From sequence record OU509535.1: DNA of 64,000 nt, one strand, 5' to 3'. The position numbers and the translations under genes were made by a program. Below the pieces are notes generated by a model. It did no database searches. It was not told the DNA's origin and was given only the letters and a program-made list of their open reading frames with translations. Numbering within the stretch: the first letter of the stretch is position 1; every line of letters starts with the position of its first letter. Positions 1,037 through 19,508 of the stretch are shown in pieces.

Positions 1037-1240
1037 ATGAATGATTTGGATTCCATGTTGTGGTATACTTTATCCGTTCTTTCATTTGAACGCGATAAAC
1101 ACAAAGTACAAGCATCAAAAAATCCAGATATATTACAGAAAAAGAAAGAATACGCATTAGTGTATTCTTTGGAAAAAACATTTATTTCTATGCATCTGGA
1201 ATACAGAGAATACATAACATCAAATGGTATTAAAAAATGA
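1037..1240 (+). CDS. Hypothetical protein
   Basis: 67 aa, tiles with neighbours. Confidence 0.65.
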   Translation: MNDLDSMLWYTLSVLSFERDKHKVQASKNPDILQKKKEYALVYSLEKTFISMHLEYREYITSNGIKK

Positions 1241-1572
1241 AATATAAATCCATAGTACACAAAAGATTTAAGTCAATATATTACACGGAAATTAATGTTC
1301 ATAAAAAAGTAAAAGGTATTGATTTTTATATTGATAAAGTATATCTGGATTATGATGTAGTTACTAATACATTCGAATGCACAGATCTCTTTGATTCAAT
1401 ACCAGTACCTAACTTGGCTGAATTAAGTGAAGAAGAAGAATTTCAGTACTCACTAGTATATGAAGATATATGGGGATTTAAATGGGATTATTATCGAATG
1501 GTGTCTTATCAAAAAGCACTAATATCCTCTATAAAAAAACAAAATTACTTATTAATTAATCTGGAATATTAA
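1237..1572 (+). CDS. FQYST-family protein (short member)
   Basis: SEEEEFQYSLVY motif; ATGA overlap. Confidence 0.75.
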   Translation: MKYKSIVHKRFKSIYYTEINVHKKVKGIDFYIDKVYLDYDVVTNTFECTDLFDSIPVPNLAELSEEEEFQYSLVYEDIWGFKWDYYRMVSYQKALISSIKKQNYLLINLEY

Positions 1573-1573
1573 T

Positions 1574-2107
1574 ATGCAAAACAAGTACAATTATAATGAC
1601 CCCGAATTTGCTACACTCGCATATGATATAGCAAAAATGGTAAAAGATTTAAAGGAATGTGCTATTGGTACAAAGGATATCAGTACTGTGATGAATACCG
1701 ATGTAAATTTTAAGAAAGAATTACAGGTAACTGATTCGACAAATCCTTTGGCTGCATTCAAGAATTGTGTGGTAAATTACTATGGTGTAGTACAATGTAA
1801 CATCGGATATAAATCCCACGAATGTAATATAGTAACTTTTGATGCATATGGAAATCTCCATGAAATTGATATTTATAAGGGTCAAAAATTAATCATTAAA
1901 TTCATGGATAGATACCTATTTACCAAATCATATCATTTCGAATTACCAAAAATTGATGGTGCATTCATTGATAATTATGATGCTTATATTTTTCAGTTAA
2001 GCACTACAAATGAATATTACAGTATCATTGATTTTGTACTTAGAATGAAAATGAAATTCCAGAGTAATTTGTACTTAAAAGGAAGTATCCTTGATCTGGT
2101 GTTATAA
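1574..2107 (+). CDS. FQYST-family protein
   Basis: YDAYIFQLSTT motif near C-terminus. Confidence 0.7.
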   Translation: MQNKYNYNDPEFATLAYDIAKMVKDLKECAIGTKDISTVMNTDVNFKKELQVTDSTNPLAAFKNCVVNYYGVVQCNIGYKSHECNIVTFDAYGNLHEIDIYKGQKLIIKFMDRYLFTKSYHFELPKIDGAFIDNYDAYIFQLSTTNEYYSIIDFVLRMKMKFQSNLYLKGSILDLVL

Positions 2108-2112
2108 AATAT

Positions 2113-2298
2113 ATGAAAATTTTAACAAAAGAAGAAGTACAAAAACGATTAATTGTACAACAAGATTATACAACAATGCATAGATTTCTTGAGCTTCGTT
2201 TATTGAATTTTATTGGTACAGATTATCAGAATTATTGTGTAGATTTTTATATCAAAATGCTTGAATCCGAAATTAAACTAAAATTAAAATTAAAATGA
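2113..2298 (+). CDS. Small protein, paralog family B (GT-N/D-x-Q)
   Basis: ELRLLNFIGTDYQ. Confidence 0.75.
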   Translation: MKILTKEEVQKRLIVQQDYTTMHRFLELRLLNFIGTDYQNYCVDFYIKMLESEIKLKLKLK

Positions 2299-2471
2299 AA
2301 CACATTAATAGTATTCAGTACCTTAAATTGTACAAAAAAGCACTTGATAATTCCAGTACAATGTTGGAGTTTAATGAAAACTTTTTCATATACGTATTGG
2401 GAACTAACTATCAAGAAAAGTTAATGCTTCCATATTTGGAAACTCTCTGCTATTCAATGAAGAAAAAATGA
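2295..2471 (+). CDS. Small protein, family B (58 aa, not in ORF track)
   Basis: Hand translation MKHINSIQYL...YVLGTNYQEKLMLPYLETL...KKK*; ATGA overlaps at both ends. Confidence 0.75.
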   Translation: MKHINSIQYLKLYKKALDNSSTMLEFNENFFIYVLGTNYQEKLMLPYLETLCYSMKKK

Positions 2472-2659
2472 AAATGTTAACTCCAACTGAATATGACAAT
2501 GTAATAAGTTTAGTATATGTTTCTTTACCACGAAAATGTAATTCTATCAGAAAATTTGAATTATATTTAAAAGCGGTTCTTGACACCAATTATCAGGCAC
2601 AAATTGCAAATATATACATTTCCAGACTTATTCTACATATGCAAGGAAAAATTATATGA
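2468..2659 (+). CDS. Small protein, family B
   Basis: ELYLKAVLDTNYQ. Confidence 0.75.
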   Translation: MKMLTPTEYDNVISLVYVSLPRKCNSIRKFELYLKAVLDTNYQAQIANIYISRLILHMQGKII

Positions 2660-2673
2660 TTTATTTGAATCTG

Positions 2674-2696
2674 AACCCTCTTAATTGAGGGTTTTT
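2674..2696 (+). terminator. Intrinsic terminator
   Basis: AACCCTC-ttaatt-GAGGGTT then T tract. Confidence 0.75.
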
Positions 2697-2700
2697 GTGA

Positions 2701-2729
2701 TTGACTTTCTCTATAATTTAATGTACAAT
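2701..2729 (+). promoter_or_regulatory. sigma70-type promoter
   Basis: TTGACT-17 nt-TACAAT. Confidence 0.7.
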
Positions 2730-2764
2730 AACAATAAATGTTAATAACATAGGGGTATTATGTT

Positions 2765-3088
2765 TTGAAAATCACACTAGGCGAAGATAAGTATATCAAA
2801 TTTTTAATCAATTTATATCAATCATTTAATTCAATACCAGGAGATACTGAATATGATAGGAATATAAAATTGATTTCTATAATTATGTTAGATACCATAT
2901 GTGAACCACATATTGAGTATTTGAACAAAAAATACAAAAACAAAAGAGTAACAGACAGATTTAATCATCCATATTATATTGGATATTTCAAAAGCACCCC
3001 ACTGGCCTTCTTTGCTTATACATTTACTGTTAATTTTCATATGTTCAGTCTTAAAGATTTGTATTTAACTGAGGAGACTTTCGCGTGA
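2765..3088 (+). CDS. Hypothetical protein, family A
   Basis: TTG start after AGGGG; HIEYLNKKYKNK. Confidence 0.7.
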   Translation: MKITLGEDKYIKFLINLYQSFNSIPGDTEYDRNIKLISIIMLDTICEPHIEYLNKKYKNKRVTDRFNHPYYIGYFKSTPLAFFAYTFTVNFHMFSLKDLYLTEETFA

Positions 3089-3378
3089 GTATGTATGAAC
3101 GAATAGATAAAACAGTACTAAAAACTTTACAAATGATTTATCGATTGACTAATTCAAGACACAAATACACTGAAATATTCACTTATACATTTATTGAATA
3201 TCTTAATTCCAGATACGAATATTGTACTATAAATGATGATACATTCAGGGTGGTGGAATTTAAGATTGGGCTATTTGGTATTTTATGTGTGATTAATTGT
3301 GAAAGAACCGGTAGAAATGAATACATTTATACACATGATTTAGGTGATGTAGATTTTGTTGTACAAAAAACATCATAG
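3085..3378 (+). CDS. Hypothetical protein, family A
   Basis: GTGA overlap; FIEYLNSRYEY. Confidence 0.75.
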   Translation: MSMYERIDKTVLKTLQMIYRLTNSRHKYTEIFTYTFIEYLNSRYEYCTINDDTFRVVEFKIGLFGILCVINCERTGRNEYIYTHDLGDVDFVVQKTS

Positions 3379-3388
3379 AGATAATATA

Positions 3389-3706
3389 ATGAAACTATCA
3401 GAAGACAAATATTATTGTACTTTAGATTTAATTACTGAATTATTTCTTGATAATAAAATACGAAAAACATATGCTTCTTATACATTGAGTAAATTGCGAG
3501 GCATTCATTATGAAGAATATATTCAGTACTTATCTATGAAATACAAAAATTCAGTATGTGATGTTTATTCTCATGGAGAAAGTGTCATTCTTGAATTTTC
3601 ATATGATCAATTTGGTATTTTAATTTATTGTACTAACAATTCATACGGGTTTTGTACTAGATTGGATTTTGTGGAAATATCTTCTTATGAAAAAACTGAA
3701 AAATAG
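3389..3706 (+). CDS. Hypothetical protein, family A
   Basis: Start moved to ATG3389; YIQYLSMKYKNS. Confidence 0.75.
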   Translation: MKLSEDKYYCTLDLITELFLDNKIRKTYASYTLSKLRGIHYEEYIQYLSMKYKNSVCDVYSHGESVILEFSYDQFGILIYCTNNSYGFCTRLDFVEISSYEKTEK

Positions 3707-4686: not shown

Positions 4687-4687
4687 T

Positions 4688-4870: not shown

Positions 4871-4890
4871 AAATAATTTTTAATTTAAAC

Positions 4891-4918
4891 TTGACATTTG
4901 TTAATTTTGTGATATAGT
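4891..4918 (+). promoter_or_regulatory. sigma70-type promoter
   Basis: TTGACA-16 nt-TATAGT with extended TG. Confidence 0.7.
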
Positions 4919-5495: not shown

Positions 5496-5891
5496 ATGTC
5501 ATTTATGAAAGATAAAGAATATGCTGACATAATAATTAAAATTATAAAACATTTAAAACAACAAAATTCTGATCTAGGAACTTCAAATTTTAATGAATAT
5601 GCCAGCTTTGGATATTTGTGTTATAATTATAATGAACCAACATTGACTTATTTTTATGATAAAAAAGACAAAGATTTCGACAAGTTTTCAACTAAACTGG
5701 AAGTACTTTCATTTGATATCAATACAGAAGAAGGTTATTTTCAGGCATCTTTGATGTATCCAGATTCACAAATGCGAGTAATGTTTTTATTTGCAGAATT
5801 GAAAAAGAATTTTAAAAATGATTCATTTGTTATTCCCATGAAGTTACTAAATGATTATTTAATATATAAAGGTTATAACTGTTATGTCTGA
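5496..5891 (+). CDS. FQYST-family protein
   Basis: TEEGYFQASLMY. Confidence 0.8.
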   Translation: MSFMKDKEYADIIIKIIKHLKQQNSDLGTSNFNEYASFGYLCYNYNEPTLTYFYDKKDKDFDKFSTKLEVLSFDINTEEGYFQASLMYPDSQMRVMFLFAELKKNFKNDSFVIPMKLLNDYLIYKGYNCYV

Positions 5892-6273
5892 ATTTGAAAA
5901 AATTATTAAACGTTGTGAAATATATTTTTCTCATATTATAAAGAATATAGGAAAAACAAAAAAATCTACAGTTATAAATTGTGAATACAAAGATAATGGA
6001 TTTATTTGTTATACACCAGAAAATAATGAATGTTATTTTTATTTCCCAGATCCAGAATTTGGTTCTTCTGGTATAAAAACAGAAATACCAGATGATGTTC
6101 TAACTGAAGAAGGTTATTTTCAGTACTCAACTATTTTTGATGATGAAAAATTATTCAGTATGGTGTTAATGAAATATTTTAAAGATAATTGTGATTTTGG
6201 ATTTTCTGTAGAGGCTCCTGATTGTCTTTTTGACTTCCTACAACGAACCGTATACAATGAAAATACTAACTGA
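5884..6273 (+). CDS. FQYST-family protein
   Basis: TEEGYFQYSTIF. Confidence 0.8.
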   Translation: MSEFEKIIKRCEIYFSHIIKNIGKTKKSTVINCEYKDNGFICYTPENNECYFYFPDPEFGSSGIKTEIPDDVLTEEGYFQYSTIFDDEKLFSMVLMKYFKDNCDFGFSVEAPDCLFDFLQRTVYNENTN

Positions 6274-6451
6274 GAGTGATTGCTACAGAATATGTTCTGA
6301 AGTATCTTTAAACTCAATCAATAAAAATAAAGTACAACGTGCAGAACTAATATTAGTAAGATTTATGGGTACAAACTTTGAAGGAATTGCTTTGTATAAT
6401 TATATGAATTGTTTAATGGAATATTGTAATGAGTTACATAACAGAAAGTAG
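6257..6451 (+). CDS. Small protein, family B
   Basis: MKILT start like 2113; ELILVRFMGTNFE. Confidence 0.7.
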   Translation: MKILTESDCYRICSEVSLNSINKNKVQRAELILVRFMGTNFEGIALYNYMNCLMEYCNELHNRK

Positions 6452-6851
6452 TTACGAAAGAGATATTTTTATGTGTTCAGAAATAATGAGAATTCATGAA
6501 CGATTTATTGGTCTTGATTCTTTGGTGTGGAGTTTTAGAGAGGATGCATATTTAATTTTCAGTCCAGGAACTAAAAATTATATACAATACCATCTTTCAT
6601 CACAAGAACAAAACGAGTTATTTTTTAAAGGATCTACTGTACTGAGTTCAATCGATCTTGATTATCCTCTTAAAGAAGACATTGATTTGTGTACAGAAGA
6701 AGGTTATTTTCAGGGTTCATTAATTCTTGACAAAAAATATTTAACAGTATATACTATTTTTCAGTTCCTTGATAAAAATTGTAATTCTGCGTTCTCTATT
6801 GATATGGTACCTTTTTTGAAGGGGTTTAGACGAAAATATGAAAATAGTTGA
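6429..6851 (+). CDS. FQYST-family protein
   Basis: TEEGYFQGSLIL. Confidence 0.8.
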   Translation: MSYITESSYERDIFMCSEIMRIHERFIGLDSLVWSFREDAYLIFSPGTKNYIQYHLSSQEQNELFFKGSTVLSSIDLDYPLKEDIDLCTEEGYFQGSLILDKKYLTVYTIFQFLDKNCNSAFSIDMVPFLKGFRRKYENS

Positions 6852-7233
6852 TTATGATTACCAAAGGGATCTAGCTATATCTAATATCATTTTGGAACTC
6901 TGTGAAGATGATCCTTATTATACTGTAGTTCGAGGATATAGTAATAATGAATACAAAAGTGATGGGTTTTTGGTTTATTCCAATGGAACACCCGTAAATG
7001 AAATTCTTGTATTTCCAAGGTTCAATGAAGTACTACAAAAGAACATGGTACCAAATAAACTTGTTAAATTAGTCCAAACTGATTTGTTGTCCGAAGAATC
7101 ATATTTTCAACATAGTACTTTATATGATGCATTCGAATTGCATGTTATGTTTATTTTTCAATACTTAATGAAATATAGTACACATTCAGTATCAATGCCA
7201 ATGAGATCAATCTGGAATGAATATGAAAAATAG
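6838..7233 (+). CDS. FQYST-family protein
   Basis: SEESYFQHSTLY. Confidence 0.8.
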   Translation: MKIVDYDYQRDLAISNIILELCEDDPYYTVVRGYSNNEYKSDGFLVYSNGTPVNEILVFPRFNEVLQKNMVPNKLVKLVQTDLLSEESYFQHSTLYDAFELHVMFIFQYLMKYSTHSVSMPMRSIWNEYEK

Positions 7234-7750
7234 TTATATCTATGATGAAAAAGAAAACAAAGGTGAATTAATTCAACACATGACTATACAAGAATGTTTT
7301 GAATACGCTGATAAAGTAATTGATTTATATAATATCTTACATAATAAACCAAAAATCAAAATACTCAATTTAGCTGAACTATCGTCGGATAAATCTTTTG
7401 AATACACAAGCAATGATAATTTAAATGATTTAGTTTATTCAGAAGATAATCATTATTTTATAGGTACTTCATTTATTGAGATTTATTCAGGAATACGATA
7501 TATTCCAGAGAGTGTTCATAAAATATTAGGTATAACATCAGGTGGTGGAACATCCAACCTCATTGATATCGGTGATGTTATCATTGAAAACACGGAAGAG
7601 GATATCTTTCAGTACAGTACTGTTTATAGTGAACACGAATTAAAGCATTTGATTATTTTAAGTGCAATTAAAAAGAATAAGTGTAGAGAGTTCTTTATGG
7701 ATTTGAATTATTTGGAATTTTTATTAGATTATCATTATAACTTAAATTAA
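7217..7750 (+). CDS. FQYST-family protein
   Basis: TEEDIFQYSTVY. Confidence 0.8.
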   Translation: MNMKNSYIYDEKENKGELIQHMTIQECFEYADKVIDLYNILHNKPKIKILNLAELSSDKSFEYTSNDNLNDLVYSEDNHYFIGTSFIEIYSGIRYIPESVHKILGITSGGGTSNLIDIGDVIIENTEEDIFQYSTVYSEHELKHLIILSAIKKNKCREFFMDLNYLEFLLDYHYNLN

Positions 7751-7759
7751 AAAAATATT

Positions 7760-8281
7760 ATGAAATCAATTTATACTGAAAGTATTAAAATCATTAATGA
7801 CATTAATGATTTCTTTAAATATGTAAATTCAAATTCTTATTATGCACTTCATAATTTGAATATACTAATTTTTGATCATCCAGGTTCTGTTATTTCTGCA
7901 TTTGAACCTAAAAATTTTTATCAAATCTGTTTAATTAGAGATAATGTCCAGGAATCAATTTTTAAGGTATCATTGAATACGAGATATGAATACTGGAACG
8001 AATCAAAAATGTTCTATTTTGACGCGAGCAGAAATGAATTTTCAATATGTGAAAAAACAAAAATCCAAAATACTGTTGATATTTTGGAATATGATAACAA
8101 TATAGAAGAGTTAGCATTCCAGTACAGTACTGAAGTACAACTGGAATTTGTTCCTGTTTGTGTATTGGCTTCGTACTTAAAGAAGAATCACGACCCGAAA
8201 TACCCATTATTTAAACTGATACTCAACGATGTTGATTTTTTATTAAAACGATTCAAGGAAATAGAAGATTATGATTGGTAA
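7760..8281 (+). CDS. FQYST-family protein
   Basis: IEELAFQYSTEV. Confidence 0.8.
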   Translation: MKSIYTESIKIINDINDFFKYVNSNSYYALHNLNILIFDHPGSVISAFEPKNFYQICLIRDNVQESIFKVSLNTRYEYWNESKMFYFDASRNEFSICEKTKIQNTVDILEYDNNIEELAFQYSTEVQLEFVPVCVLASYLKKNHDPKYPLFKLILNDVDFLLKRFKEIEDYDW

Positions 8282-8762
8282 TTTAATCGATTTTAATTCG
8301 GTATTAAAATTCTCAGAGAATTTAATTAAAATTCACAAAGCATTTACTGATGATTTCTTTTTGAAAGTACCGAACTTTTGTACTAAACGAGAAGAAGCAC
8401 CTGGTGAGTATGAATATTCAGTTAATCAACCAATAAAATGTTCACAAATGTATACAAGTTTAACTGAAGAATATATTATTGATATTAATGATATATATTT
8501 TATATCTTTTATTCCCGATTCGATGCTTGAAATATATATTAATGTTATTAAATCAAAAGAACTTAGCACAAAAGATGTGAATTCATTTGATATATCAGAA
8601 GAGGCGTATTTCCAGGGAAGCACGATTTATGAACCAGTAATGTTAAATTCTATTTTAGTGGCATCTGTACTAAATCGAAGTGATTGTGATAAATTTTATT
8701 TTGATTTAGATTATTATGATCTTTGTGTTGAGTATATGGAAAAATATAATTATGTTCGATAA
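8271..8762 (+). CDS. FQYST-family protein
   Basis: SEEAYFQGSTIY. Confidence 0.8.
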   Translation: MIGNLIDFNSVLKFSENLIKIHKAFTDDFFLKVPNFCTKREEAPGEYEYSVNQPIKCSQMYTSLTEEYIIDINDIYFISFIPDSMLEIYINVIKSKELSTKDVNSFDISEEAYFQGSTIYEPVMLNSILVASVLNRSDCDKFYFDLDYYDLCVEYMEKYNYVR

Positions 8763-9246
8763 ATGCATTAGGACTGCACAAGAAATTATTCAAATAATAG
8801 TAGCAATAGAATCTACTGATGTAAAGTATGATGATTTCAAAAGTAATTTTACAGAAAAATATGTACAGGACTCAGATTTTATTCAGTACTATATTAAAGG
8901 TGAAGAATCTGTAATATTCTATGCAAATGAAACATATATTTGTGATTATGACAATTCTTCTAGATTTAATTACATCTGTTTTATTCCAAAATCAAATATT
9001 ATAGTATTTCGCCTTTCTGATGAATTCGAAACAATATATGAATATGAACTATTTAAAGATTTTTCAGAAGAACTGGCATTTCAGTACAGTACATTGTACA
9101 ATTATGATATAATTGAAATGATGATTATGTTCTGGTATTTTAACCAGATCTACAATGGCTCTTTTTATATTAATATGAATTTATTTGAAAAAGCCAAAAA
9201 AATATATGAGAGATATCATGACTTCGAATACAAATCCATTAATTGA
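8752..9246 (+). CDS. FQYST-family protein
   Basis: Start moved to ATG8752; SEELAFQYSTLY. Confidence 0.8.
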   Translation: MFDKCIRTAQEIIQIIVAIESTDVKYDDFKSNFTEKYVQDSDFIQYYIKGEESVIFYANETYICDYDNSSRFNYICFIPKSNIIVFRLSDEFETIYEYELFKDFSEELAFQYSTLYNYDIIEMMIMFWYFNQIYNGSFYINMNLFEKAKKIYERYHDFEYKSIN

Positions 9247-9808
9247 ACACGATAGTCAATTTTTTTACGAAAAAATAACTAATAGTATAGAATTATTAAA
9301 AAATATAGTCACTTATTTAAACCAAAATGATATGGAATATGTTGCTCATAAAACTGGCGATTTGTATTTTTATATTACAAATGAAAACCCTCGTATTATG
9401 TCATTCCACACTGGTGAATATTCTTTTATGGATTTTTATACTAGTACAGAAAAGAAAGATGGTAGAAATTCAGTAGACATATTCAATAATAAAAAGAAAA
9501 CGTGTATAGATTTTAATATACTACAAAATACTGATTCTTTTTTTCTCTCAGATTCCAGAAATGGTGCAGCGAATGTAATTGATGCGTCAAAAATAATCGA
9601 ATTGCCTATAATTAAAGTTCAAACAGAAGAAGAAAGATTTCAGTACAGTACTGTGTATAATGATATTGAATTGCGTAGTATTGAATTGTATTATAAATTT
9701 ATGAAAGAACAATTGTATTTTTACGTTACATTAGATGGTGTTGAAGAAATTCAAACTGTACTTCAAACAATACATAATGATTTACCAAAATATATAAGGA
9801 AAAAATAA
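9218..9808 (+). CDS. FQYST-family protein
   Basis: Start uncertain (9185/9218); TEEERFQYSTVY. Confidence 0.8.
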   Translation: MTSNTNPLIEHDSQFFYEKITNSIELLKNIVTYLNQNDMEYVAHKTGDLYFYITNENPRIMSFHTGEYSFMDFYTSTEKKDGRNSVDIFNNKKKTCIDFNILQNTDSFFLSDSRNGAANVIDASKIIELPIIKVQTEEERFQYSTVYNDIELRSIELYYKFMKEQLYFYVTLDGVEEIQTVLQTIHNDLPKYIRKK

Positions 9809-10305
9809 TGAATAGTGAATATAAAAAATCTAAACACATCACGGATTCGTTGGTAAAATTAATCAAATCAATACTGAATGGTGCAATCGATGGACGACTA
9901 ATCTATGATGACAGTGATGACACCATTAATGTTACATTAAAATCCAACAAAAAAAGTTATAGAAATCTATTTACTACTGGGTGGTATTATAGTGAGTACT
10001 TACTTGAAGACAACTCTTCATTGGGATATTCAGAAACTAATTATTTTGCTTTTGACCCAAATGATAGTTCTCTTGTTGTGACTATTCGACAATGTAATGG
10101 TAAAAGAACAAGAGAGAAAATTAATACATCTGGACTTAATATAGATACAGAAGAAGGGTGGTTCCAGTACAGTACTTTATATAATGATACTGAACTATTT
10201 TCTATTATGTTATGGTGTGCATTTAAGAAAGAAAACTTCCCATCATGTTTAGTGGAATTTTCAGAATTTTTCAAATATTTGGAAGAAACAAATGATATTA
10301 TCTGA
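9808..10305 (+). CDS. FQYST-family protein
   Basis: TEEGWFQYSTLY. Confidence 0.8.
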   Translation: MNSEYKKSKHITDSLVKLIKSILNGAIDGRLIYDDSDDTINVTLKSNKKSYRNLFTTGWYYSEYLLEDNSSLGYSETNYFAFDPNDSSLVVTIRQCNGKRTREKINTSGLNIDTEEGWFQYSTLYNDTELFSIMLWCAFKKENFPSCLVEFSEFFKYLEETNDII

Positions 10306-10873
10306 TATCAAATCTTTTGGTACTGAACTGGATGTAATTAAAAATATCATTATTAAGATGATTGAAATTCACAGAACTAAAAGACGATGTACGTCTTTTA
10401 GCGAAGAAGGTTTTGAACTTGAGCGTGGATTGTTTCATATTGATTTGATGATTAGTGATTATGAATGTATTTTTAGTTTAAGAAACGATTCGTCTCAAAT
10501 GAAAAATACTGGGATTGATTTATCCATTATTCCACATCATCAAATTATACTTGGTGGTTCTGGAAACGTATACATTTCACCCTTCGAATCTGGATTTAGT
10601 AGAAGTATAGCTTTACCAAAAAATGAAGGTAGTGAACCTTACATTTTAATTAACGATGATGCACTTGATGAATGGAAATTTCAGTTAAGTACATTATATG
10701 ATCCAATAATCGTTGATATAATCAACCTAGAAGAAGAACTAAGAGAGCACTTAGCCTCTTTGGAGCACAACAATAATGTATATGCACCTTTGTTATTGGT
10801 TGTTGATTTAAAATGTTTAGAAAAGAAAAAACACGATTTGAATTCTATGCTTGAATTTTTAGAGAACATATAA
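10292..10873 (+). CDS. FQYST-family protein
   Basis: LDEWKFQLSTLY. Confidence 0.8.
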   Translation: MILSDIKSFGTELDVIKNIIIKMIEIHRTKRRCTSFSEEGFELERGLFHIDLMISDYECIFSLRNDSSQMKNTGIDLSIIPHHQIILGGSGNVYISPFESGFSRSIALPKNEGSEPYILINDDALDEWKFQLSTLYDPIIVDIINLEEELREHLASLEHNNNVYAPLLLVVDLKCLEKKKHDLNSMLEFLENI

Positions 10874-10876
10874 AAC

Positions 10877-11485
10877 ATGAAATTAGAATATTTCCCAAAT
10901 TTAGAATACAAACATTGTATTGCTTATTCAATGTTTGTGGAAGATTTAATTAATGCATTACATGATTCAGAAATACGAAGAGAATGTGGAATTATAAGAA
11001 TAGAAAATAATAGATTTTATATCAACACTGGAATTAGAAAAATAGATCTGGATATATTAAGTGTAGATACAACCTCTACACCAACATTGATTTCTTCCAG
11101 AGTTGGTAATTTCGAATTTTACTGGACTCACTGTTATGAATTCAATAAAGATTCTAAACATGATTTTATGATAGATGGTGATTTGTGCGAAAAAATTAAG
11201 TACAGTTGTGACTATACAGAAGAAATGTTCTTTCAAAACAGCTTATTATACAAAAACTGTGATTTGTTTTATATTATATTGTTCAATTATTTAAAATGTA
11301 ATTTAAATCATTCATTCTGTATGGCATCTGCACCCATCCCTGAAGATTTTTTTAAATTAATTCCAAAATTACTTTACATTGCTACAGAAAAGGGGTATTA
11401 TGGTGATCTGTTAGAGTTGATGAAAAATATTCATCCAAATAACAACGATAAAAGTTCATATCTATCAGGATTTATCAATCTATGA
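10877..11485 (+). CDS. FQYST-family protein
   Basis: TEEMFFQNSLLY. Confidence 0.8.
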   Translation: MKLEYFPNLEYKHCIAYSMFVEDLINALHDSEIRRECGIIRIENNRFYINTGIRKIDLDILSVDTTSTPTLISSRVGNFEFYWTHCYEFNKDSKHDFMIDGDLCEKIKYSCDYTEEMFFQNSLLYKNCDLFYIILFNYLKCNLNHSFCMASAPIPEDFFKLIPKLLYIATEKGYYGDLLELMKNIHPNNNDKSSYLSGFINL

Positions 11486-12045
11486 CATACGAAGAATACA
11501 AAAAGACAATACCAGTACTCGCTGAAATTGTTTCATTACTAAAAAATCATCTAAGTAAAAGAACCATATACAACGATAGATTCTTCACCTTACCCAAATC
11601 CAATTTTTATATAAAACAAATCAATGATGCTGATATTGACATAAGAATTTCAAAAAATAGTGATTCCATTATTCGCGTTGCAAAAGAATCTCAGTGTTTT
11701 GATGGAGAGATCCCTATGTTACTTCGTCAGTTCGGTGATGTATATTGTTCATCCAGAAAACACCCAGGGTACATTAAAATATATTCAAGTGAAAGTGACA
11801 TAGATTTACTGGATGTTGACTGCCAAGAAGAGCAATTATTTCAATACAGTACAATTCTTTCTAATATAGATCTTATCGTACTTGAACTTGAGTTAGAACT
11901 TCAAAAAGTACTGGACGAAAATGTTTACTGTGTAATTACATTATTCTATGATAATGATTACTACAGTGAATGTGCTTCATACAATGATTATGTAAATCTA
12001 CGAGATGATTTAAAAGATGAAAAAAGAACATGGGAACATTATTAA
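11482..12045 (+). CDS. FQYST-family protein
   Basis: QEEQLFQYSTIL. Confidence 0.8.
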   Translation: MTYEEYKKTIPVLAEIVSLLKNHLSKRTIYNDRFFTLPKSNFYIKQINDADIDIRISKNSDSIIRVAKESQCFDGEIPMLLRQFGDVYCSSRKHPGYIKIYSSESDIDLLDVDCQEEQLFQYSTILSNIDLIVLELELELQKVLDENVYCVITLFYDNDYYSECASYNDYVNLRDDLKDEKRTWEHY

Positions 12046-12601
12046 TAACTTAAAAGTTATTAAAGAATTAAGCACTGCTATGATTTTGTTGTACAAAAAT
12101 ACAGACAAAATTAATGCTGATAATTATATTCTAAGTACAACAAGATTAAATCCATACGAAAATGGGACATTGTACTTGAGATCAAAAGCATCTCAAAATA
12201 TCATTGGAATTATGAATGAATCAGTTTGCTTGGAAGAATATGCACACAAAGATGAAGAGGTACCTGGTAATTACAGGGTTATTATACGAGATTCGGCATT
12301 CTTCTTATGTAGTCCGATGAATCCATTTTTCAATAAAATATATGCTGATTTTAATTATACAAATGGTGTTGAAACTTTTCCTATTCCCAGTGAAGATACA
12401 TGGGAAGAAGAGATGTTTCAACTATCATTAGTAGTACCAAATATGGTATGTTCCGAAGTACTGGAATTATATAAAGAAATACACAATAATATTGAAAGTC
12501 ATTTTTATATTTCATATGAATATGAAAATTATGATACCACATTATTAAAAGATGCATTAAATGACGTTAAAAAATTTATCAAGCACTACATCAACAAATG
12601 A
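12017..12601 (+). CDS. FQYST-family protein
   Basis: WEEEMFQLSLVV. Confidence 0.8.
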   Translation: MKKEHGNIINNLKVIKELSTAMILLYKNTDKINADNYILSTTRLNPYENGTLYLRSKASQNIIGIMNESVCLEEYAHKDEEVPGNYRVIIRDSAFFLCSPMNPFFNKIYADFNYTNGVETFPIPSEDTWEEEMFQLSLVVPNMVCSEVLELYKEIHNNIESHFYISYEYENYDTTLLKDALNDVKKFIKHYINK

Positions 12602-13139
12602 TACTGAAATGTACTTATTGTACAAAAATATTTTACTTGAATTAAAAAGATTGTTGCATACTGATAATGTACGCGATAATTATCTACATCAAGATATAAA
12701 TGGTGAAATTTATTGTATAATTTCTGATGGTAAAATCGCATTATATGCTAATTCCGAAAATATAGCATTCACTTATGTTTTATTTGCTTATTCGTTTAAT
12801 TCACCAAATTACGTATCAGAAAAATATAGAGTAGAATATGATTCATATGTATACCTTGATCGTGATAATTCAACTAATGAATATATGATTAATCACGAAA
12901 CAAATAATATCATCCAATTGATTAAAGAAAATGAGTTGAGTTCAGATGAATTAGAAAGTTTATTATTCCAACACAATACATTGCATTCAGATGAAGATAA
13001 ATTTTGTATTTGGATGGATTATTATATCAGAGATTACATTGAAGATAAACATTATTTCTGTGTAAACTATAACAAATTAAATGAATTCAGTACTGATATA
13101 TATGAAAATATTCTATTGGAATTAAAGAAATATGATTGA
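12561..13139 (+). CDS. FQYST-family protein
   Basis: LESLLFQHNTLH; start uncertain (12561/12609). Confidence 0.75.
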   Translation: MTLKNLSSTTSTNDTEMYLLYKNILLELKRLLHTDNVRDNYLHQDINGEIYCIISDGKIALYANSENIAFTYVLFAYSFNSPNYVSEKYRVEYDSYVYLDRDNSTNEYMINHETNNIIQLIKENELSSDELESLLFQHNTLHSDEDKFCIWMDYYIRDYIEDKHYFCVNYNKLNEFSTDIYENILLELKKYD

Positions 13140-13743
13140 ATTAAAATTTAAAATACAAGAACTAAAAGAACTGGTAATTCACTTAAAGAATGTAAATGAT
13201 AAATTCCATCTCTCAGAAAATTTCATGATTTATATTCCAGGTACCGAATCAACACTCATTCACGAAATGTCAACAAAAGGGATATATTCCAATATTACAT
13301 TGAAATCAAGAGATTACAAAACTAATATCTATTACAACACCATCTCTTTAATCAGGAGTTCAGATCCCTCTGAAGAACGTATCAGGAAATCTAAAACAGT
13401 AGGTTCAATTTATAGTAGTTCATGTAATATATATTCTTTATCCGATAATACCAAAATGCAGATTGGTATATATGAAAACTATCATAGAAAGTGTGATACC
13501 AGTGAAAATGGAACTATTGAATTGCCTGATTATGTAAAAGATTCTGATGAATTTGAAGCATTATTATTTCAATACAGTACAGAGAGTGATATTAAGTACA
13601 ACAGATTATTAAAAATGCGTATCATAAAAGAAATATATGATGTACTTCAATATGAAGAAATATCAATCGATGATACATTATTTGATTTGGATTCAAATGA
13701 TTTGAAAACAATTATACAGGAATTGAAATTAAAATTATGCTAA
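13132..13743 (+). CDS. FQYST-family protein
   Basis: FEALLFQYSTES. Confidence 0.8.
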   Translation: MIELKFKIQELKELVIHLKNVNDKFHLSENFMIYIPGTESTLIHEMSTKGIYSNITLKSRDYKTNIYYNTISLIRSSDPSEERIRKSKTVGSIYSSSCNIYSLSDNTKMQIGIYENYHRKCDTSENGTIELPDYVKDSDEFEALLFQYSTESDIKYNRLLKMRIIKEIYDVLQYEEISIDDTLFDLDSNDLKTIIQELKLKLC

Positions 13744-14300
13744 CATTGTCCGAAATTCTGGAATACGATAATAAAATTATCAATCTCTTGGGTGATATAT
13801 ACTTTGAATTCAACAAAAAAGAAGATAAAAACACCAATAAAGCCACTATACTGAAAGTAAATGATAGTGAATTAGTTGTATTAGAAAATAATCTTCATTT
13901 TTATTCTGTTGTACTTAAAGTGTATAATGGTATGTCAGAAACTCCGTGGTATATGGTGAAAAACACAGATGATTATGATACATTTCGTGGTATTAAACCA
14001 TTCATCAACGAGTATGGTATTTTTTGTACTGCAAATGATTACGATGTATTATATGATGAATACGATCAATTCGGTACTGTTCATAACGTATTCACAGAAG
14101 AACAATATTCCTGTATAGAAAGTACTGCTTTTCAGTTAAGTACAGAGTTTGATTTACAAGTAGTAAGAGCATTAGCAATGCAAACCAATTTGTATTACAA
14201 CAAAAGACACTATCAAATAATGTGTAATACAAAAATCCAGGATCATTTATATAATCCAAAATTAATTTTAAATCTAGAAAAATATCTGGAAACACTATGA
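13737..14300 (+). CDS. FQYST-family protein
   Basis: IESTAFQLSTEF. Confidence 0.8.
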   Translation: MLTLSEILEYDNKIINLLGDIYFEFNKKEDKNTNKATILKVNDSELVVLENNLHFYSVVLKVYNGMSETPWYMVKNTDDYDTFRGIKPFINEYGIFCTANDYDVLYDEYDQFGTVHNVFTEEQYSCIESTAFQLSTEFDLQVVRALAMQTNLYYNKRHYQIMCNTKIQDHLYNPKLILNLEKYLETL

Positions 14301-14788
14301 AAGAAATTATTGAATTAATAGAATTGATGCAGTCAAGTATAAGTTCATGTAAACTTGCAACCGGTGAACATAATTTGAATGCTGATTTTGATTTAGTAGT
14401 CAATAATCAAAAGAAATGTATTCACTTGATTAAAAAATCCAGTACTAAAGCAATCAAACATACAGCACTCATGATAGCTTCTTCACATCCTGCTAAAAAA
14501 TATAATTCAAATATTGCTAATATAAGTTCACTGTACAAACCAGAAAGTACATCTTCATATATCAGTTCAATTAAAAGTGAATTAGATTTTCATAAATGCA
14601 CTTTGGCTTCTTATGAAGAATTAGAATTTCAGTACAGTACGGTGATTACACGAAGTGATATTTTTATAATTCAATGCTTGTTATATTCAATTGATTTTAA
14701 AGATATTGTGTACATGACAAATGATTTTATGAAATATAATTATATTGAAATACTCAGATCATTAAAGGACAAATTATGCCAAAATTAG
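14297..14788 (+). CDS. FQYST-family protein
   Basis: YEELEFQYSTVI. Confidence 0.8.
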   Translation: MKEIIELIELMQSSISSCKLATGEHNLNADFDLVVNNQKKCIHLIKKSSTKAIKHTALMIASSHPAKKYNSNIANISSLYKPESTSSYISSIKSELDFHKCTLASYEELEFQYSTVITRSDIFIIQCLLYSIDFKDIVYMTNDFMKYNYIEILRSLKDKLCQN

Positions 14789-15369
14789 ATGCACAGTACT
14801 GTGATAAATTACTGAATGCATTGATTACTATACAGAAGAATATAAAAAAAGAAAAGAGTATTCAAATTTACTATAATGACAGTTATATTCTCGTACAATG
14901 CAACCCAGATGGTAATTACGTAGAGTTCAGTTTTAAGAAAGAAGATGTTCATGATTGCATTAGTATTGATTTGCATGAAGCAACACCACATCAAAGTTTA
15001 AAAAATATTATTAAAGCATATAAAAGAACTACTTATGCATTTGACACTTTAGTTCACAGATATAAAACATTTTATTGTATGTTTGATACAGACGAATATG
15101 ATTTCAATTTAGTAGGATTTGATGAAAATAACATCATTAACATTCCTTATGATTTTGATGATGAATTATATTTTCAGTACAGTACTTTATATAGTTTACC
15201 ACCACAGAGTGATCTTGAGCTTCACAAAAGTATTCATAAAAAATGCAAAAATGAACTACCAAATAAAAGTGTAGTTAGAATTTCATATCTATCCATCGAA
15301 TTAGATCAAAACGAAATGGATGAAATTTTGGAATCTTTGTATTCATTGGTTCCTGTGTTTAAGCATTAA
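14776..15369 (+). CDS. FQYST-family protein
   Basis: DDELYFQYSTLY. Confidence 0.8.
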   Translation: MPKLDAQYCDKLLNALITIQKNIKKEKSIQIYYNDSYILVQCNPDGNYVEFSFKKEDVHDCISIDLHEATPHQSLKNIIKAYKRTTYAFDTLVHRYKTFYCMFDTDEYDFNLVGFDENNIINIPYDFDDELYFQYSTLYSLPPQSDLELHKSIHKKCKNELPNKSVVRISYLSIELDQNEMDEILESLYSLVPVFKH

Positions 15370-15372
15370 AAT

Positions 15373-15393
15373 CCCCTTGACTGGGGTTTTTTT
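15373..15393 (+). terminator. Weak intrinsic terminator overlapping a promoter -35
   Basis: CCCC-ttgact-GGGG then T7. Confidence 0.55.
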
Positions 15394-15405
15394 ATTTGTT
15401 ATAAT
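15377..15405 (+). promoter_or_regulatory. sigma70-type promoter
   Basis: TTGACT-17 nt-TATAAT. Confidence 0.75.
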
Positions 15406-15425
15406 AAAAAAATAGAGAATATAAA

Positions 15426-16052
15426 ATGAAAAAAGAATCATATAACATACTTCGTGTATGTGAAAATTTAATATTATTACTACTGTCTTATAAGAAAAAT
15501 GTAAATTTAAGCATGAAAATTCTTGATTATCATATTAATATTAATATTGCATGTAGTACTCATATTTCAATATATTTAAATATTAGTAATTTTGGTTCTA
15601 TTACAACCACATCATCCAATATCATTTCATTTAATGCTGATAATATTCAACCAGTTGAATTAAATTTACCAATTGAAGATATTAAAGGTGAAATGATTTA
15701 TTTTGATGACCGATATTGTGAATATGATGTTAATAGTCCGAATTTAGTCGGAGCGTATTTAAAAAAATATGATCCTGATATTGATGGATACAATGAAACA
15801 AACTGTCATGAAGTAATGGAAAGAACGTATGATGAATGGGCTTTTCAGTACAGTACATTATATGATTTTGTTCCAGATAAAGAAGATTATTTTTACTTGA
15901 AAAATTTCATGCATAAATTGGGTAACGAATTCGATTATACATATTCAAATATTTTATTTGAATCAAAAGTGGATATTGTGAATCTAAAATCTGCAATTGA
16001 TATATGTACCGAAACTGTTAAAAGGAAGATTGATGAAAACTCCGATATTTGA
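15426..16052 (+). CDS. FQYST-family protein
   Basis: YDEWAFQYSTLY. Confidence 0.8.
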   Translation: MKKESYNILRVCENLILLLLSYKKNVNLSMKILDYHININIACSTHISIYLNISNFGSITTTSSNIISFNADNIQPVELNLPIEDIKGEMIYFDDRYCEYDVNSPNLVGAYLKKYDPDIDGYNETNCHEVMERTYDEWAFQYSTLYDFVPDKEDYFYLKNFMHKLGNEFDYTYSNILFESKVDIVNLKSAIDICTETVKRKIDENSDI

Positions 16053-16548
16053 AAAATCAAAGAAATATGCACAACGTATATCTGATTGTATTGAACTTAT
16101 ACAATTTATGAGAAAAACTTTTTACGTAAATCACAAAGGTTCTTTTCGATATCAACATGAAAATAATGGACTTATTACCATGAGCAGAGGCAAATCACCC
16201 TTTGGTGAGGTTATATTAACATATGTACCAGATAATATTCATATTCCGTTCAATGATAATTATCTAATAGAAATATCAAATTATATTCCAGTACTAGATT
16301 ATACAGAAGAAACCGAATTTCAATATAGTACTTTGTATAATAATGAAGAATTGTTAATGCATTATATATATTCCATTCTATGGAATTTGAACATCAAAGG
16401 GAAAATTTATATAAACCAAAATATAAATTTAAGAACATATACAATGGCATTGAAAAATATCAATAGTTATTTTCAGGACACAAATTATAATTTATATAAA
16501 GAATTGTGTAATAAAAAATTCAAATCAATGGAAATAAACTACTTATGA
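16033..16548 (+). CDS. FQYST-family protein
   Basis: AAGGAAG upstream of ATG16033; TEETEFQYSTLY. Confidence 0.8.
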   Translation: MKTPIFEKSKKYAQRISDCIELIQFMRKTFYVNHKGSFRYQHENNGLITMSRGKSPFGEVILTYVPDNIHIPFNDNYLIEISNYIPVLDYTEETEFQYSTLYNNEELLMHYIYSILWNLNIKGKIYINQNINLRTYTMALKNINSYFQDTNYNLYKELCNKKFKSMEINYL

Positions 16549-17129: not shown

Positions 17130-17536
17130 TTCTATATCACTGTAGTACTGTAAAAATTGACAGCTTTTATATCCCCTTTGGTGGCTTACATTTTGGTGGT
17201 ATTAATAGTGCTTTAGAAGCGGCGTTACGTAAGCTGAGAAGCCCACGAAACACGTTGGATCACAAGGAGATACATATCCATAAATGTTTCGTGGAACTCG
17301 GTAAAACACAGCACAGTGAGGATTTGGGTGGTGAGGATTCGTGGAGAGCGGTGATCGATGAATGCTCACGATTAGGATTTAATTCAGTACAATATAAGAA
17401 TGTATATGAACCTGATTCAGTACCTAGCTATATGATTTGGGACGCCAGTAGAGTAAAAATCATAGAAGTGGATTGTATTCATATGGATGACGCCGAACAA
17501 ATACTGGAAGAATTTTATGATTCATATTGTACTTAA
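17126..17536 (+). CDS. Putative ADP-ribosyltransferase-fold protein (polyvalent-protein-associated ART-like)
   Basis: LYHCS...GLHFG...AALRK at N-terminus and GFNSVQYKNVYE...SYMIWDASRVKI at C-terminus match the pattern I recall for this family; visibly higher GC than neighbours. Confidence 0.55.
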   Translation: MILYHCSTVKIDSFYIPFGGLHFGGINSALEAALRKLRSPRNTLDHKEIHIHKCFVELGKTQHSEDLGGEDSWRAVIDECSRLGFNSVQYKNVYEPDSVPSYMIWDASRVKIIEVDCIHMDDAEQILEEFYDSYCT

Positions 17537-17556
17537 ACTAATACAGGTAACGATTC

Positions 17557-18108
17557 ATGTCAGAACCAATAGAATATTTTAAAGCATGTTCTCGTTTGGT
17601 TAATTCAATTTCAAAGGATTTTTTATCAAGAAAACCAAAAGAGTATATTGATAACGTACTTGGATATAATTTTATATTATATTATGGTTTTAGTTCATTA
17701 AGAATTTCAGTTGATGATGAAAACGAAACACCAGTACTTACAATTTTTAATGTTGATTACATCACATGCAACCCAGAAGTATTTCATGAACCACATTGGT
17801 CTCTACATAATATAGTTAACAGTGGTATACAATGTGGTTTTGTGAAAAAAATTGACCACCGTTTTTATTCAGGTGATGAACTCATTGATCATGAGATTGA
17901 TTTTAGTTCCAAATTATTCTCTAATACTTTAACTGAAGAAGAATTTTTCCAGTACAGTACGGTACTGAAATTAAACACATTGGAATATTATCTGGAATGG
18001 AATAAAACTATAATGCAAGACAATTCAAATGAAAAAGTTGTTTGGCATTGGTATTATGGTGATTTCATTACAAAAGAAGCCATTGATGAATTATCAAAAA
18101 GAATATAA
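17557..18108 (+). CDS. FQYST-family protein
   Basis: TEEEFFQYSTVL. Confidence 0.8.
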   Translation: MSEPIEYFKACSRLVNSISKDFLSRKPKEYIDNVLGYNFILYYGFSSLRISVDDENETPVLTIFNVDYITCNPEVFHEPHWSLHNIVNSGIQCGFVKKIDHRFYSGDELIDHEIDFSSKLFSNTLTEEEFFQYSTVLKLNTLEYYLEWNKTIMQDNSNEKVVWHWYYGDFITKEAIDELSKRI

Positions 18109-18120
18109 TAAGGATTAAAA

Positions 18121-18609
18121 ATGATGCTTGACATTATCGGAAATTTAGATATAGTTAATCAAATCATTCAATCAGCAATTGATGATATTAAGAAGAAGGA
18201 GATTGAGGTACGATGGAATTTTTTATCGTCTGATATTGGATACCTTGTTGATATTAGTGAACCAACAAAGAAACAAATGGTTGTACAAATCAATGCACTA
18301 AGTAACAGGCAATCTCTCTGTAAATTTTATATTACAAAGAATGGTATAATTCTCAGATATAATAATAAATTGTTGTTTGAATACAAAAACAGTACTAAAA
18401 CATTCATTACAAATTTATTTGATGAACCATTTTATATTGATGATTTAGAAAGTACTTTCTTTACTCAAAGATGTTTAAATTCGTTTGGTTCACTGGATAA
18501 TATAGTATTTGATTATGATATCATGACTGAAACATTAAAGAAAACACAGGATTTATATTATGCCTACTTGGTGTTTACCCAAAAACGAGAAAATGCTAAC
18601 ACAGCCTGA
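18121..18609 (+). CDS. Hypothetical protein, possibly divergent FQYST member
   Basis: AAGGA SD; LESTFFTQRCL. Confidence 0.7.
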   Translation: MMLDIIGNLDIVNQIIQSAIDDIKKKEIEVRWNFLSSDIGYLVDISEPTKKQMVVQINALSNRQSLCKFYITKNGIILRYNNKLLFEYKNSTKTFITNLFDEPFYIDDLESTFFTQRCLNSFGSLDNIVFDYDIMTETLKKTQDLYYAYLVFTQKRENANTA

Positions 18610-19039
18610 CGATAGCGTATATAAGTGTATTGAGCATTTCGATTATTTTATTAATTCAAACAAAGAATTTATTGTGGTCGATTGTATACCATTGTATTTC
18701 ATTAAATCCGATTCAAATACAATCAAAGAATTTAATATGTACTATGGTAGTGAATTTATATCAATTAAATTAATCAATAAATGTTTGAAAAATTCTTATT
18801 CAATTGAAAGTTATTACAATGGAATATTTTTGCTCGGTATTAGTAATGAGTACATAAATTCAGTACTATTAAAATCAAACACAAATGAACCAGTTTATGC
18901 TGATCGAGAAGCATTCAATGAAATCGATTTCTTCCAGTATACATGTGGCGATGCTTATATACCATTACGCACCAATACGATGTGTTTAGTTAAAGATAAA
19001 TTGTTGGAGATTGAAAATGATTTCAAAAAATACTATTAA
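18593..19039 (+). CDS. Divergent FQYST-family protein
   Basis: FNEIDFFQYTC. Confidence 0.7.
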   Translation: MLTQPDDSVYKCIEHFDYFINSNKEFIVVDCIPLYFIKSDSNTIKEFNMYYGSEFISIKLINKCLKNSYSIESYYNGIFLLGISNEYINSVLLKSNTNEPVYADREAFNEIDFFQYTCGDAYIPLRTNTMCLVKDKLLEIENDFKKYY

Positions 19040-19508
19040 AACTGGAATGCAATGTTTGATTGATTATTTTGAAAATCCAAAACCATACACTGAGGTACTG
19101 AAAGGTGATCACACATTTCATTACTACGGTGATGATATTCAGATTATAGTTGGATTTCATACATTAAAACTTTGTATTATTGATAATAAAAATTCAAATT
19201 GTTTTATTTTCTCTCCAGTAAAAATGCGAGAAGATGATATTTGCACCGAATTCGGTACTATTGTTGCTGTAATTGATGATGATGGTAGAAAAACACATGT
19301 ATACGATACACTATTCATTGAAAGTTCTACTTTGTTTCAATTGAGTTTAATTCATGATATTAATATTGATGGATTGGATATATTGATGTATAAGTATGGC
19401 GAATTACTTGAATTACTAGGGAAATCTAAAATTAATCACAATACTAAATACATTAAAGAAGCATGTGAAAATTTATCAAAAGCTCACGTGCAATACTCTA
19501 ACGAATAA
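19017..19508 (+). CDS. FQYST-family protein
   Basis: GGAG SD before ATG19017; IESSTLFQLSLIHD. Confidence 0.75.
   Translation: MISKNTIKTGMQCLIDYFENPKPYTEVLKGDHTFHYYGDDIQIIVGFHTLKLCIIDNKNSNCFIFSPVKMREDDICTEFGTIVAVIDDDGRKTHVYDTLFIESSTLFQLSLIHDINIDGLDILMYKYGELLELLGKSKINHNTKYIKEACENLSKAHVQYSNE

Follow-up and report, generated by a model that had tools for sequence, protein, structure and literature searches.

Large eukaryotic DNA viruses carry multigene families in which paralogs of a single fold each bind a different host factor. Among jumbo phages, Bacillus phage G has a lineage-specific zinc-ribbon family of about 35 copies (PMC7824862), while in phage CBB RpoD-like promoters cluster in a region of short hypothetical genes that its authors took to be early (PMC5259590). 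Here we compare with these systems an array of 25 paralogous genes between positions 1237 and 19508 of a 64,000-nucleotide stretch of record OU509535.1 (the window, whose coordinates are used throughout). The genes encode a family of small proteins that has no name, no detectable relative of solved structure and no known function. An earlier note on this DNA had proposed that they join a shared C-terminal docking module to many unrelated specificity domains; our analysis indicates instead that the members, 110-210 residues long and mostly acidic, each fold as one compact alpha/beta domain, and that the paralogs are old.

Like the phage G family, the one described here amounts to dozens of small one-domain paralogs in a jumbo-phage genome, with a function deduced only from context; unlike it, it has another fold without known relatives, lacks a metal-binding Cys/His pattern and occurs in several genera rather than in one phage. 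With the multigene families of eukaryotic DNA viruses it shares a single scaffold and many old, clustered paralogs that are non-structural and presumed to be host-directed, but there is no relationship of sequence or fold, and the analogy extends to function alone. A sharply conserved short segment present in many copies of divergent proteins is also a mark of F-box and adaptor families; here, however, there is no separable docking domain, independent substrate domain or Pfam match, and no common partner is known. Finally, co-directional, short, overlapping genes of unknown function with sigma-70-type promoters recall T4-like early gene clusters and the presumed early region of CBB (PMC5259590), but those regions hold mostly unrelated singletons, whereas here most of the genes in a stretch of more than 13 kb belong to a single family.

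The window between 6000 and 20000 is 100% identical to OU509535.1, a Klebsiella pneumoniae phage genome of 347.5 kb, and 97-98% identical to Muenster, K64-1, RaK2, KP13-7 and RCIP0023 (genus Alcyoneusvirus); the source is a Klebsiella jumbo phage of the RaK2/K64-1/Muenster group, with a G+C content of 25-33%. In every annotated relative the genes of the array are labelled "hypothetical protein". Roughly one gene in 12 of these 350-kb Klebsiella/E. coli phages belongs to the family.

Membership was assessed from a short motif and from profiles. In a regular-expression scan of the open reading frames (ORFs) of at least 50 amino acids (aa) in the window, the core F-Q-x-[SN]-[TL] has 27 matches, against a mean of 0.81 and a maximum of 4 after residue shuffling; 25 of these fall in 25 separate + strand ORFs of 111-208 aa between 1237 and 19508, 38-84 residues before the C-terminus. 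The earlier note had credited 25 ORFs with a longer form, in which [TS]-E-E-x-x precedes the core: the core does occur in exactly 25, but the full prefix, [TS]-E-E-x-x-F-Q, in 12 only, with E-E-x-x-F-Q in 17 and [DE]-E-x-x-F-Q in 20. The ORFs at 1574, 12561, 13132, 13737 and 19011 have lost the E-E pair and retain just the F-Q-x-S/N-T/L core. Since BLASTP in an all-against-all comparison linked just 10 members, and single-sequence jackhmmer searches with the N-terminal pieces linked none, profiles were needed. A profile of the C-terminal unit iterated over the window ORFs converged at 20 ORFs, and a full-length family profile built from an alignment of 125 sequences (the full-length profile in what follows) found 22 at an expectation value (E) < 1e-4, with 13132, 1574 and 19011 weak. 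In that alignment the mean column identity is 10%; at the motif T/S reaches 72%, E 83% (plus D 12%), the next E 94%, F 100%, Q 99% and S 96%, and the shares of the remaining residue classes are 99% for T or L, 96% for aliphatic and 65% for Y.

The motif is constrained as protein, as the earlier note had held. Its Gln is written CAG in 17 of 25 members (background 27%), its Tyr TAC in 13 of 14 (background 24%) and its Ser AGY in 19 of 24 (background 39%), so that the synonymous codon variation claimed in the note is real, yet skewed (CAG, TAC, AGT) toward a DNA word that is enriched genome-wide. F, Q and S are nonetheless retained under differing codons where the DNA word is absent, and the ratio of nonsynonymous to synonymous polymorphism (pN/pS) is about 0.2; the persistence of the amino-acid motif without the DNA word rules out a repeat at the DNA level in place of a protein motif. 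The 25 ORFs form one protein family, and their genes are truly paralogous. The members in the window are listed below, with E values against the full-length profile.

1237..1572, + strand: family member, 111 aa, the shortest; motif S-E-E-E-E-F-Q-Y-S-L; E 1.6e-07; ortholog in the metagenomic relative L002 with 50% identity
1574..2107, + strand: weak member, 177 aa, F-Q-L-S-T core only, at the right distance from the C-terminus; hhalign probability 26% and E 7e-4 over the C-terminal unit; full-length profile E 0.34
5496..5891, + strand: family member, 131 aa, short subtype; E 4.8e-22; N-terminal piece found by a profile of outside sequences only, even minus close relatives
5884..6273, + strand: family member, 129 aa, short subtype; E 3.3e-23
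6429..6851, + strand: family member, 140 aa, first of 19 consecutive; E 7e-18, in two profile stretches
6838..7233, + strand: family member, 131 aa; E 2.8e-17
7217..7750, + strand: family member, 177 aa; E 8.4e-25; L002 ortholog with 50% identity
7760..8281, + strand: family member, 173 aa; E 8.1e-20
8271..8762, + strand: family member, 163 aa, the modelled protein, one alpha/beta domain in AlphaFold2; E 4.6e-24
8716..9246, + strand: family member, longest ORF 176 aa, start in Muenster about 39 nt downstream; E 1.9e-31, full length
9185..9808, + strand: family member, longest ORF 207 aa, start further downstream in the annotation of relatives; E 6.9e-20
9808..10305, + strand: family member, 165 aa; E 8.4e-22
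10292..10873, + strand: family member, 193 aa, D-E variant of the motif; E 1.9e-13
10877..11485, + strand: family member, 202 aa, with a 40-residue C-terminal tail judged from segment lengths; E 2.7e-22
11482..12045, + strand: family member, 187 aa; E 7.8e-16
12017..12601, + strand: family member, 194 aa; E 5.9e-14
12561..13139, + strand: divergent member, 192 aa, core F-Q-H-N-T, E-E pair lost; E 7.3e-06, full length; hhalign probability 93%
13132..13743, + strand: weak member, 203 aa, core F-Q-Y-S-T; supported by the motif and hhalign (probability 28%, E 6e-4); full-length profile E 0.27
13737..14300, + strand: divergent member, 187 aa, core F-Q-L-S-T; E 2.2e-05, full length
14297..14788, + strand: family member, 163 aa; E 2.2e-12
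14776..15369, + strand: family member, 197 aa; E 4.3e-15
15426..16052, + strand: family member, 208 aa; E 4.5e-10
15997..16548, + strand: family member, longest ORF 183 aa, start in relatives 36 nt downstream; E 3.3e-22
17557..18108, + strand: family member, 183 aa; E 1e-09
19011..19508, + strand: last array member in the window, weak or divergent, 165 aa, core F-Q-L-S-L; motif present, and E 4.5e-3 covering almost the whole length

The central question is whether these proteins consist of two modules or of one domain. An exhaustive HMMER search of the 20-member alignment against 1.84 billion representative proteins (E <= 1e-3) was the informative one, as two word-index protein searches returned few relatives (9 and 4). 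It found 120 relatives, all of 68-215 aa, most of which align from about position 5 to about position 150 of the 157-position profile; in none of these 120 is the conserved unit carried by a larger protein, set in another architecture or fused to another domain. The AlphaFold2 model of the 8271-8762 protein, calculated with the 125-sequence alignment, has a mean predicted local distance difference test score (pLDDT) of 89.4 and a predicted template modelling score (pTM) of 0.86, with five concordant models. It is one compact alpha/beta domain, with helix 1 and the C-terminal unit as parts of one fold, and its elements are ordered as a helix (8-26), six strands (37-98), helices 100-104, 110-116 (which carries the motif) and 122-136, a strand (142-145) and a helix (146-158). 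The helix followed by a hydrophobic strand that the earlier note had predicted after the motif is therefore found in the model, as 122-136 and 142-145. A run with the window paralogs alone reached a pLDDT of 62.6, and its Foldseek matches were noise. In BFVD, which holds predicted viral structures, uncharacterised proteins superpose over the full length with a template modelling (TM) score of up to 0.74 at 13-27% sequence identity; these come from phages 121Q, SP27, RaK2, GAP32, Yersinia fHe-Yen9, Serratia BF and an Erwinia phage, all of the same phage clade.

The N-terminal regions, which had been described as unalignable, do share a pattern. Helix 1 is amphipathic, and in the 8271 protein its positions 8, 12, 15, 18, 21 and 25 correspond to columns filled in 90-98% of the 125 sequences, position 18 being always hydrophobic and position 15 Ala in half of them; strands 60-61 and 78-80, with hydrophobic patterns in the two strands, and the entire C-terminal unit are also conserved. 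An N-terminal profile made from outside sequences only, cut 16 residues before the invariant Phe, recognised 9 window members by their N-terminal pieces at E < 1e-3, and no other ORF or decoy reached this threshold. When all outside sequences linkable by BLAST to the tested member were removed, 5 of 20 members still scored above every decoy; N-terminal homology can therefore be demonstrated for part of the family, the rest being too diverged. The length variation among the 25 members lies mainly between helix 1 and the conserved strand (19-76 residues), and a few have C-terminal tails. The layout of a member is an N-terminal amphipathic helix, an antiparallel beta-sheet whose first part spans about 19-76 residues, and the conserved C-terminal unit, in which a short helix with [TS]-E-E-x-x-F-Q-x-S is followed by a long helix, a strand and one more helix at the end. 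As a side observation, the 6429-6851 protein matches the profile of the C-terminal unit a second time, in part, at residues of about 50-79, which suggests a degenerate internal half-duplication.

The scan of the rest of OU509535.1, piece by piece with the full-length profile, revealed 18 further members at E < 0.01 and a few motif-only candidates; with the 25 in the window, the genome therefore has at least 43 members. Most of those outside lie 2-11 kb upstream of the window or at record positions of about 318-339 kb, and one cluster stops only some 2 kb before the window begins. The pieces of the record and the positions in them are as follows.

L007, 39050-48137: further members outside the window
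L007, 16850-17455: further member region outside the window
L013, 8554-9084: further member region outside the window
L009, 44468-44890: further member region outside the window
L011, 42546-48575: further members outside the window
L012, 11299-12759: further members outside the window

All named relatives are jumbo phages of Klebsiella, Escherichia, Salmonella, Erwinia, Serratia, Yersinia and Cronobacter, and the family is confined to the RaK2-like jumbo phages that infect Enterobacterales; with its many paralogs of a single fold in one virus clade, it is a lineage-specific multigene family. L002 has 18 collinear one-to-one orthologs at 34-58% identity, and the Asteriusvirus phAPEC6 has a partly collinear array. 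Among the window paralogs, in contrast, the mean identity is about 17% (32% at most), with almost no gradient along the array, from which it follows that the duplications predate these genera; the same two observations rule out a recent tandem amplification. The pooled pN/pS of the family genes against RaK2, Muenster and KP13-7 is 0.17-0.24, no higher than that of neighbour genes. One member has an ortholog of different length in two relatives, and one truncated copy is present in the protein database. Overall the paralogs are old, and each has been retained as a collinear one-to-one ortholog under purifying selection; because each copy has been kept over long evolutionary distances, each presumably does something different.

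The arrangement of the genes agrees with the earlier description of an uninterrupted run: 19 ORFs between 6429 and 16548 are consecutive, and each has the core F-Q-x-[SN]-[TL]. In the Muenster annotation, 14 of the 18 junctions of this run overlap by 1-29 nt, 3 are gaps of 3-11 nt and 1 is a gap of 56 nt, which contains a terminator-like hairpin and a consensus promoter; the cistrons are probably translated as tightly packed, often overlapping units. Six intergenic gaps between 1 and 23 kb were examined, and in three of them we recognized sigma-70 promoters scoring 10-11 out of 12, two of which adjoin terminator-like hairpins. The features found are given here.

2673..2729, + strand: terminator-like hairpin, then a sigma-70-like promoter (TTGACT, 17 nt, TACAAT)
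4891..4918, + strand: sigma-70 consensus promoter (TTGACA, 16 nt, TATAGT, with TG); its gap precedes the transcription unit with members 5496 to 15369
15368..15405, + strand: sigma-70 consensus promoter (TTGACT, 17 nt, TATAAT, with TG) and, overlapping it, a terminator-like hairpin; both lie in the sole sizeable gap of the 19-gene run
19511..19527, + strand: terminator-like hairpin immediately after the last member

Perfect promoters (12/12) are also found in array gaps of L002 and phAPEC6. These gap promoters, together with the presumed early region of CBB, lead us to infer that the members would be transcribed early by the host sigma-70 RNA polymerase. As for the location of the products, mass spectrometry of the phAPEC6 virion identified 62 proteins (PMC7247149, Table 1), none of which belongs to gp400c-gp453c, the region with the array; in this relative, therefore, the family is non-structural and its members are not packaged internal proteins. 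The members have a mean isoelectric point of 5.2, are mostly acidic and have negative hydropathy, and probably act in the cytoplasm.

Searches of domain, structure and defence databases agree with the impression of the earlier note that no named domain is present. Pfam gave no match of any kind for the 33 ORFs scanned, NCBIfam nothing for the family members, and the PADLOC defence models a single chance-level match (E 0.009) for one member and nothing else. Against PDB sequences the family profile has chance matches only (DNA polymerase eta, E 0.24), and Foldseek with the good model finds no fold match in PDB (best E 2.3, TM 0.18). In particular, an identity of the members as ADP-ribosyltransferases, considered for the Ser-Thr in the motif and a neighbour gene, has no match in Pfam, NCBIfam, PDB sequences or PDB folds. 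In PHROGs, phrog_12674, phrog_9317 and phrog_22855, all of unknown function, match 9, 8 and 4 of the scanned ORFs (best E 1e-46 to 2e-95), so that the proteins are already grouped in a public resource; there, however, the family is split into several clusters without name, function, motif or structure, and its unity, size and fold are unrecorded. No description of the family was found in the literature searched, where the papers on RaK2, CBB, phAPEC6 and Sharanji and comparative papers on jumbo phages speak of paralogs generally, and to this extent the family is undescribed, as the note had supposed.

These results can be interpreted in terms of several hypotheses on what the conserved segment is for. 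The one we favour, at about even confidence, is that of an ancient set of binders, built on one scaffold and acting early in the cytoplasm, for which an early, host-directed role is plausible. According to this proposal the members would be non-redundant cytoplasmic binders or inhibitors, each with its own target in the host or the phage, set by the variable sheet and loops. Part of the motif would hold the fold together (Thr/Ser as helix N-cap, Phe buried) and another part, a conserved exposed Glu/Gln pair, might provide a contact common to all members. In the 8271 model Thr/Ser 109 directly precedes helix 110-116 and Asp/Ser/Asn 121 directly precedes helix 122-136, and Thr/Ser and Asp/Ser/Asn are typical N-cap residues. 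By helical periodicity, Phe114 and the hydrophobic positions 113 and 116 would form a buried face, with Glu111 and Gln115 on the opposite one; the N-cap positions and the predicted burial of Phe114 thus indicate that part of the motif is structural, while the Glu/Gln pair may be a shared contact. Several points speak against this interpretation. Arms-race effectors do not usually show strong purifying selection together with an old, stable gene content. The exposure of Glu and Gln comes from helical periodicity only and not from model coordinates, the model of high confidence is for one member only (the paralog-only one having a pLDDT of 62.6), and the N-terminal homology of 15 of 20 members falls below the best decoy once close relatives are removed. 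Moreover, the virion proteome was determined for a relative of a different genus, the number of promoter-like sites in DNA this rich in A and T is no higher than chance, and a match to a promoter consensus is not evidence of use.

A possible but rather doubtful alternative is that the motif serves structure alone, as a keystone (capping of helices, burial of Phe and internal Glu/Gln/Ser hydrogen bonds), with no shared partner, so that the members have unrelated targets or a generic role and only a fold in common. This is consistent with N-cap residue types at 109 (Thr/Ser in 72%) and 121, each directly before a helix, with an invariant Phe114 flanked by hydrophobic 113 and 116, and with the five members that lack the E-E pair and are still kept under purifying selection; it is challenged by the levels of Gln (99%), Ser (96%) and Glu (94%) against a mean column identity of 10%, which are more than capping usually imposes, and by the placement of Glu111 and Gln115 opposite the hydrophobic face on a helical wheel, itself deduced. 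The 40-odd paralogs could also be a library of single-fold binders that all dock through the invariant Glu/Gln/Ser patch onto one phage or host machine, such as the phage ClpP or the ADP-ribosyltransferase-like enzyme encoded in the array, each bringing a different host protein. This is unlikely; were it true, the family would be a bacterial-virus counterpart of eukaryotic and viral substrate-adaptor families, on a fold without a solved relative. The proposal of the earlier note, a docking module of about 50 aa at the C-terminus fused to unrelated N-terminal specificity domains and recruited in F-box-like manner to one partner such as ClpP or RNA polymerase, is quite improbable. Its appeal is that the C-terminal unit is the best-conserved part, that the N-terminal two-thirds are very divergent and not linked by single-sequence jackhmmer, and that the phage does encode a ClpP; yet the model is one domain (pTM 0.86), helix 1 is conserved throughout the family, profiles detect N-terminal pieces and paralogs match structurally over the full length, so the unit has none of the autonomy from a variable domain that an adaptor would show. 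Nor does it recur on recognisable partner domains: all 120 representative relatives have the same layout, with no case of the unit by itself in some other protein or of its fusion to a known domain, and none of the 33 ORFs has a Pfam domain. Full-length members therefore share one fold without an independent variable domain, which is the outcome that the note itself had named as speaking against its proposal. A weaker modular form may still apply, in which a conserved surface patch and a variable sheet surface are combined on a single scaffold.

Two further hypotheses were considered. That the members are enzymes, with Glu-Glu, Gln and Ser catalytic or metal-binding and the paralogs differing in substrate, would explain why invariant acidic and polar residues are gathered in one short segment, and would suit the presence of a putative ADP-ribosyltransferase gene inside the array (Muenster annotation). 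We consider it very improbable, because no polar residues (His, Lys, Arg, Asp) are conserved outside the one segment, the E-E pair is missing in five members, and there is no match in Pfam, NCBIfam, PDB sequences or PDB folds. It is barely credible, finally, that the members are packaged internal or ejected virion proteins and the motif a processing site of a phage protease. The capsid inner body of relatives does have unidentified proteins (PMC7247149), and the motif is short and sharply defined, like protease recognition sequences, but gp400c-453c are absent from the phAPEC6 virion proteome, the motif lies in a helix within a compact fold with its Phe predicted to be buried, and the host-type promoters suggest early rather than late expression. 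RaK2-like phages are under study for the therapy of Klebsiella and E. coli infections, and the function of their largest block of "hypothetical" genes matters for understanding host takeover and possibly counter-defence; with the family defined by motif, profile, model and member list, about 45 separate unknowns in each genome become a single question.

A few genes interspersed in the array are not members. The earlier note had put forward additional divergent candidates at 16545, 18121, 18560/18593, 21089 and 22195, none of which is supported (hhalign probability <= 1%). The interspersed genes are listed below.

16545-17129, + strand: non-member of unknown function, no family support from the full-length profile or hhalign
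17126-17536, + strand: non-member, putative ADP-ribosyltransferase according to the Muenster authors, no family support from the full-length profile or hhalign; phAPEC6 ortholog with 62% identity
18121-18609 and 18560-19039, + strand: two genes unsupported as members, hhalign probability below 1%

The label of the 136-aa product of 17126-17536 stems from an HHpred match to a PARP-type structure reported for Muenster; we found no Pfam or PDB sequence match for it, and the HHpred match was not reproduced. Its conservation, at the identity to phAPEC6 given above, is far above that of its neighbours.

The DNA word toward which the motif codons are skewed was also studied in its own right. In the window the palindrome AGTACT is present in 166 copies, one every 385 bp or so, where dinucleotide shuffles predict 12.5 +/- 3.6 (an enrichment of about 13-fold), and the 8-mer CAGTACTG in 35 copies against 0.4 expected; for this 8-base palindrome the literature returned primer sequences only. 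CAGTAC and GTACTG are the most over-represented hexamers among those with at least 40 occurrences. AGTACT is enriched in all three reading frames, in non-coding DNA and in every piece of the genome (about 945 copies in 347 kb), and the enrichment is shared by the Asteriusvirus and L002 loci. Outside the family, 54% of Ser-Thr pairs are encoded as AGT ACT, where 15% would be expected: the enrichment arises by synonymous codon choice and is not special to the family. AGTACT is a clade-wide signal at the DNA level, of unknown function, and it is unusual because phages normally avoid short palindromes.

Other parts of the window have features of their own. The largest non-coding stretch of the region, about 740 bp at 23056-23795, has a G+C content above its surroundings, and as RNA the segment 23100-23790 folds much better than shuffled sequences (z = -4.5). 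No Rfam match was found for it even at E 1, and Muenster annotates just a 43-aa ORF inside; it may be an undescribed structured RNA. The clpP gene that the earlier note had reported is present at 43831-44598 (Pfam E 2.5e-45); a protein with a CapR homology domain directly precedes it (43003-44598 for the pair) and has a paralog at 55630-56949. The downstream genes at 30950-34227, 40645-42048, 50031-51503 and 54111-55556 include an RNA-repair pair (T4-type RNA ligase 1 and polynucleotide kinase-phosphatase), an ATP-dependent DNA ligase, a nicotinamide phosphoribosyltransferase and a PIN-PhoH protein, among others. Upstream of the main array, at 2113-4870, there are two small paralog groups of ORFs of 60-70 aa, one formed by those at 2468, 4492 and 4688 and the other by those at 2113 and 4299.

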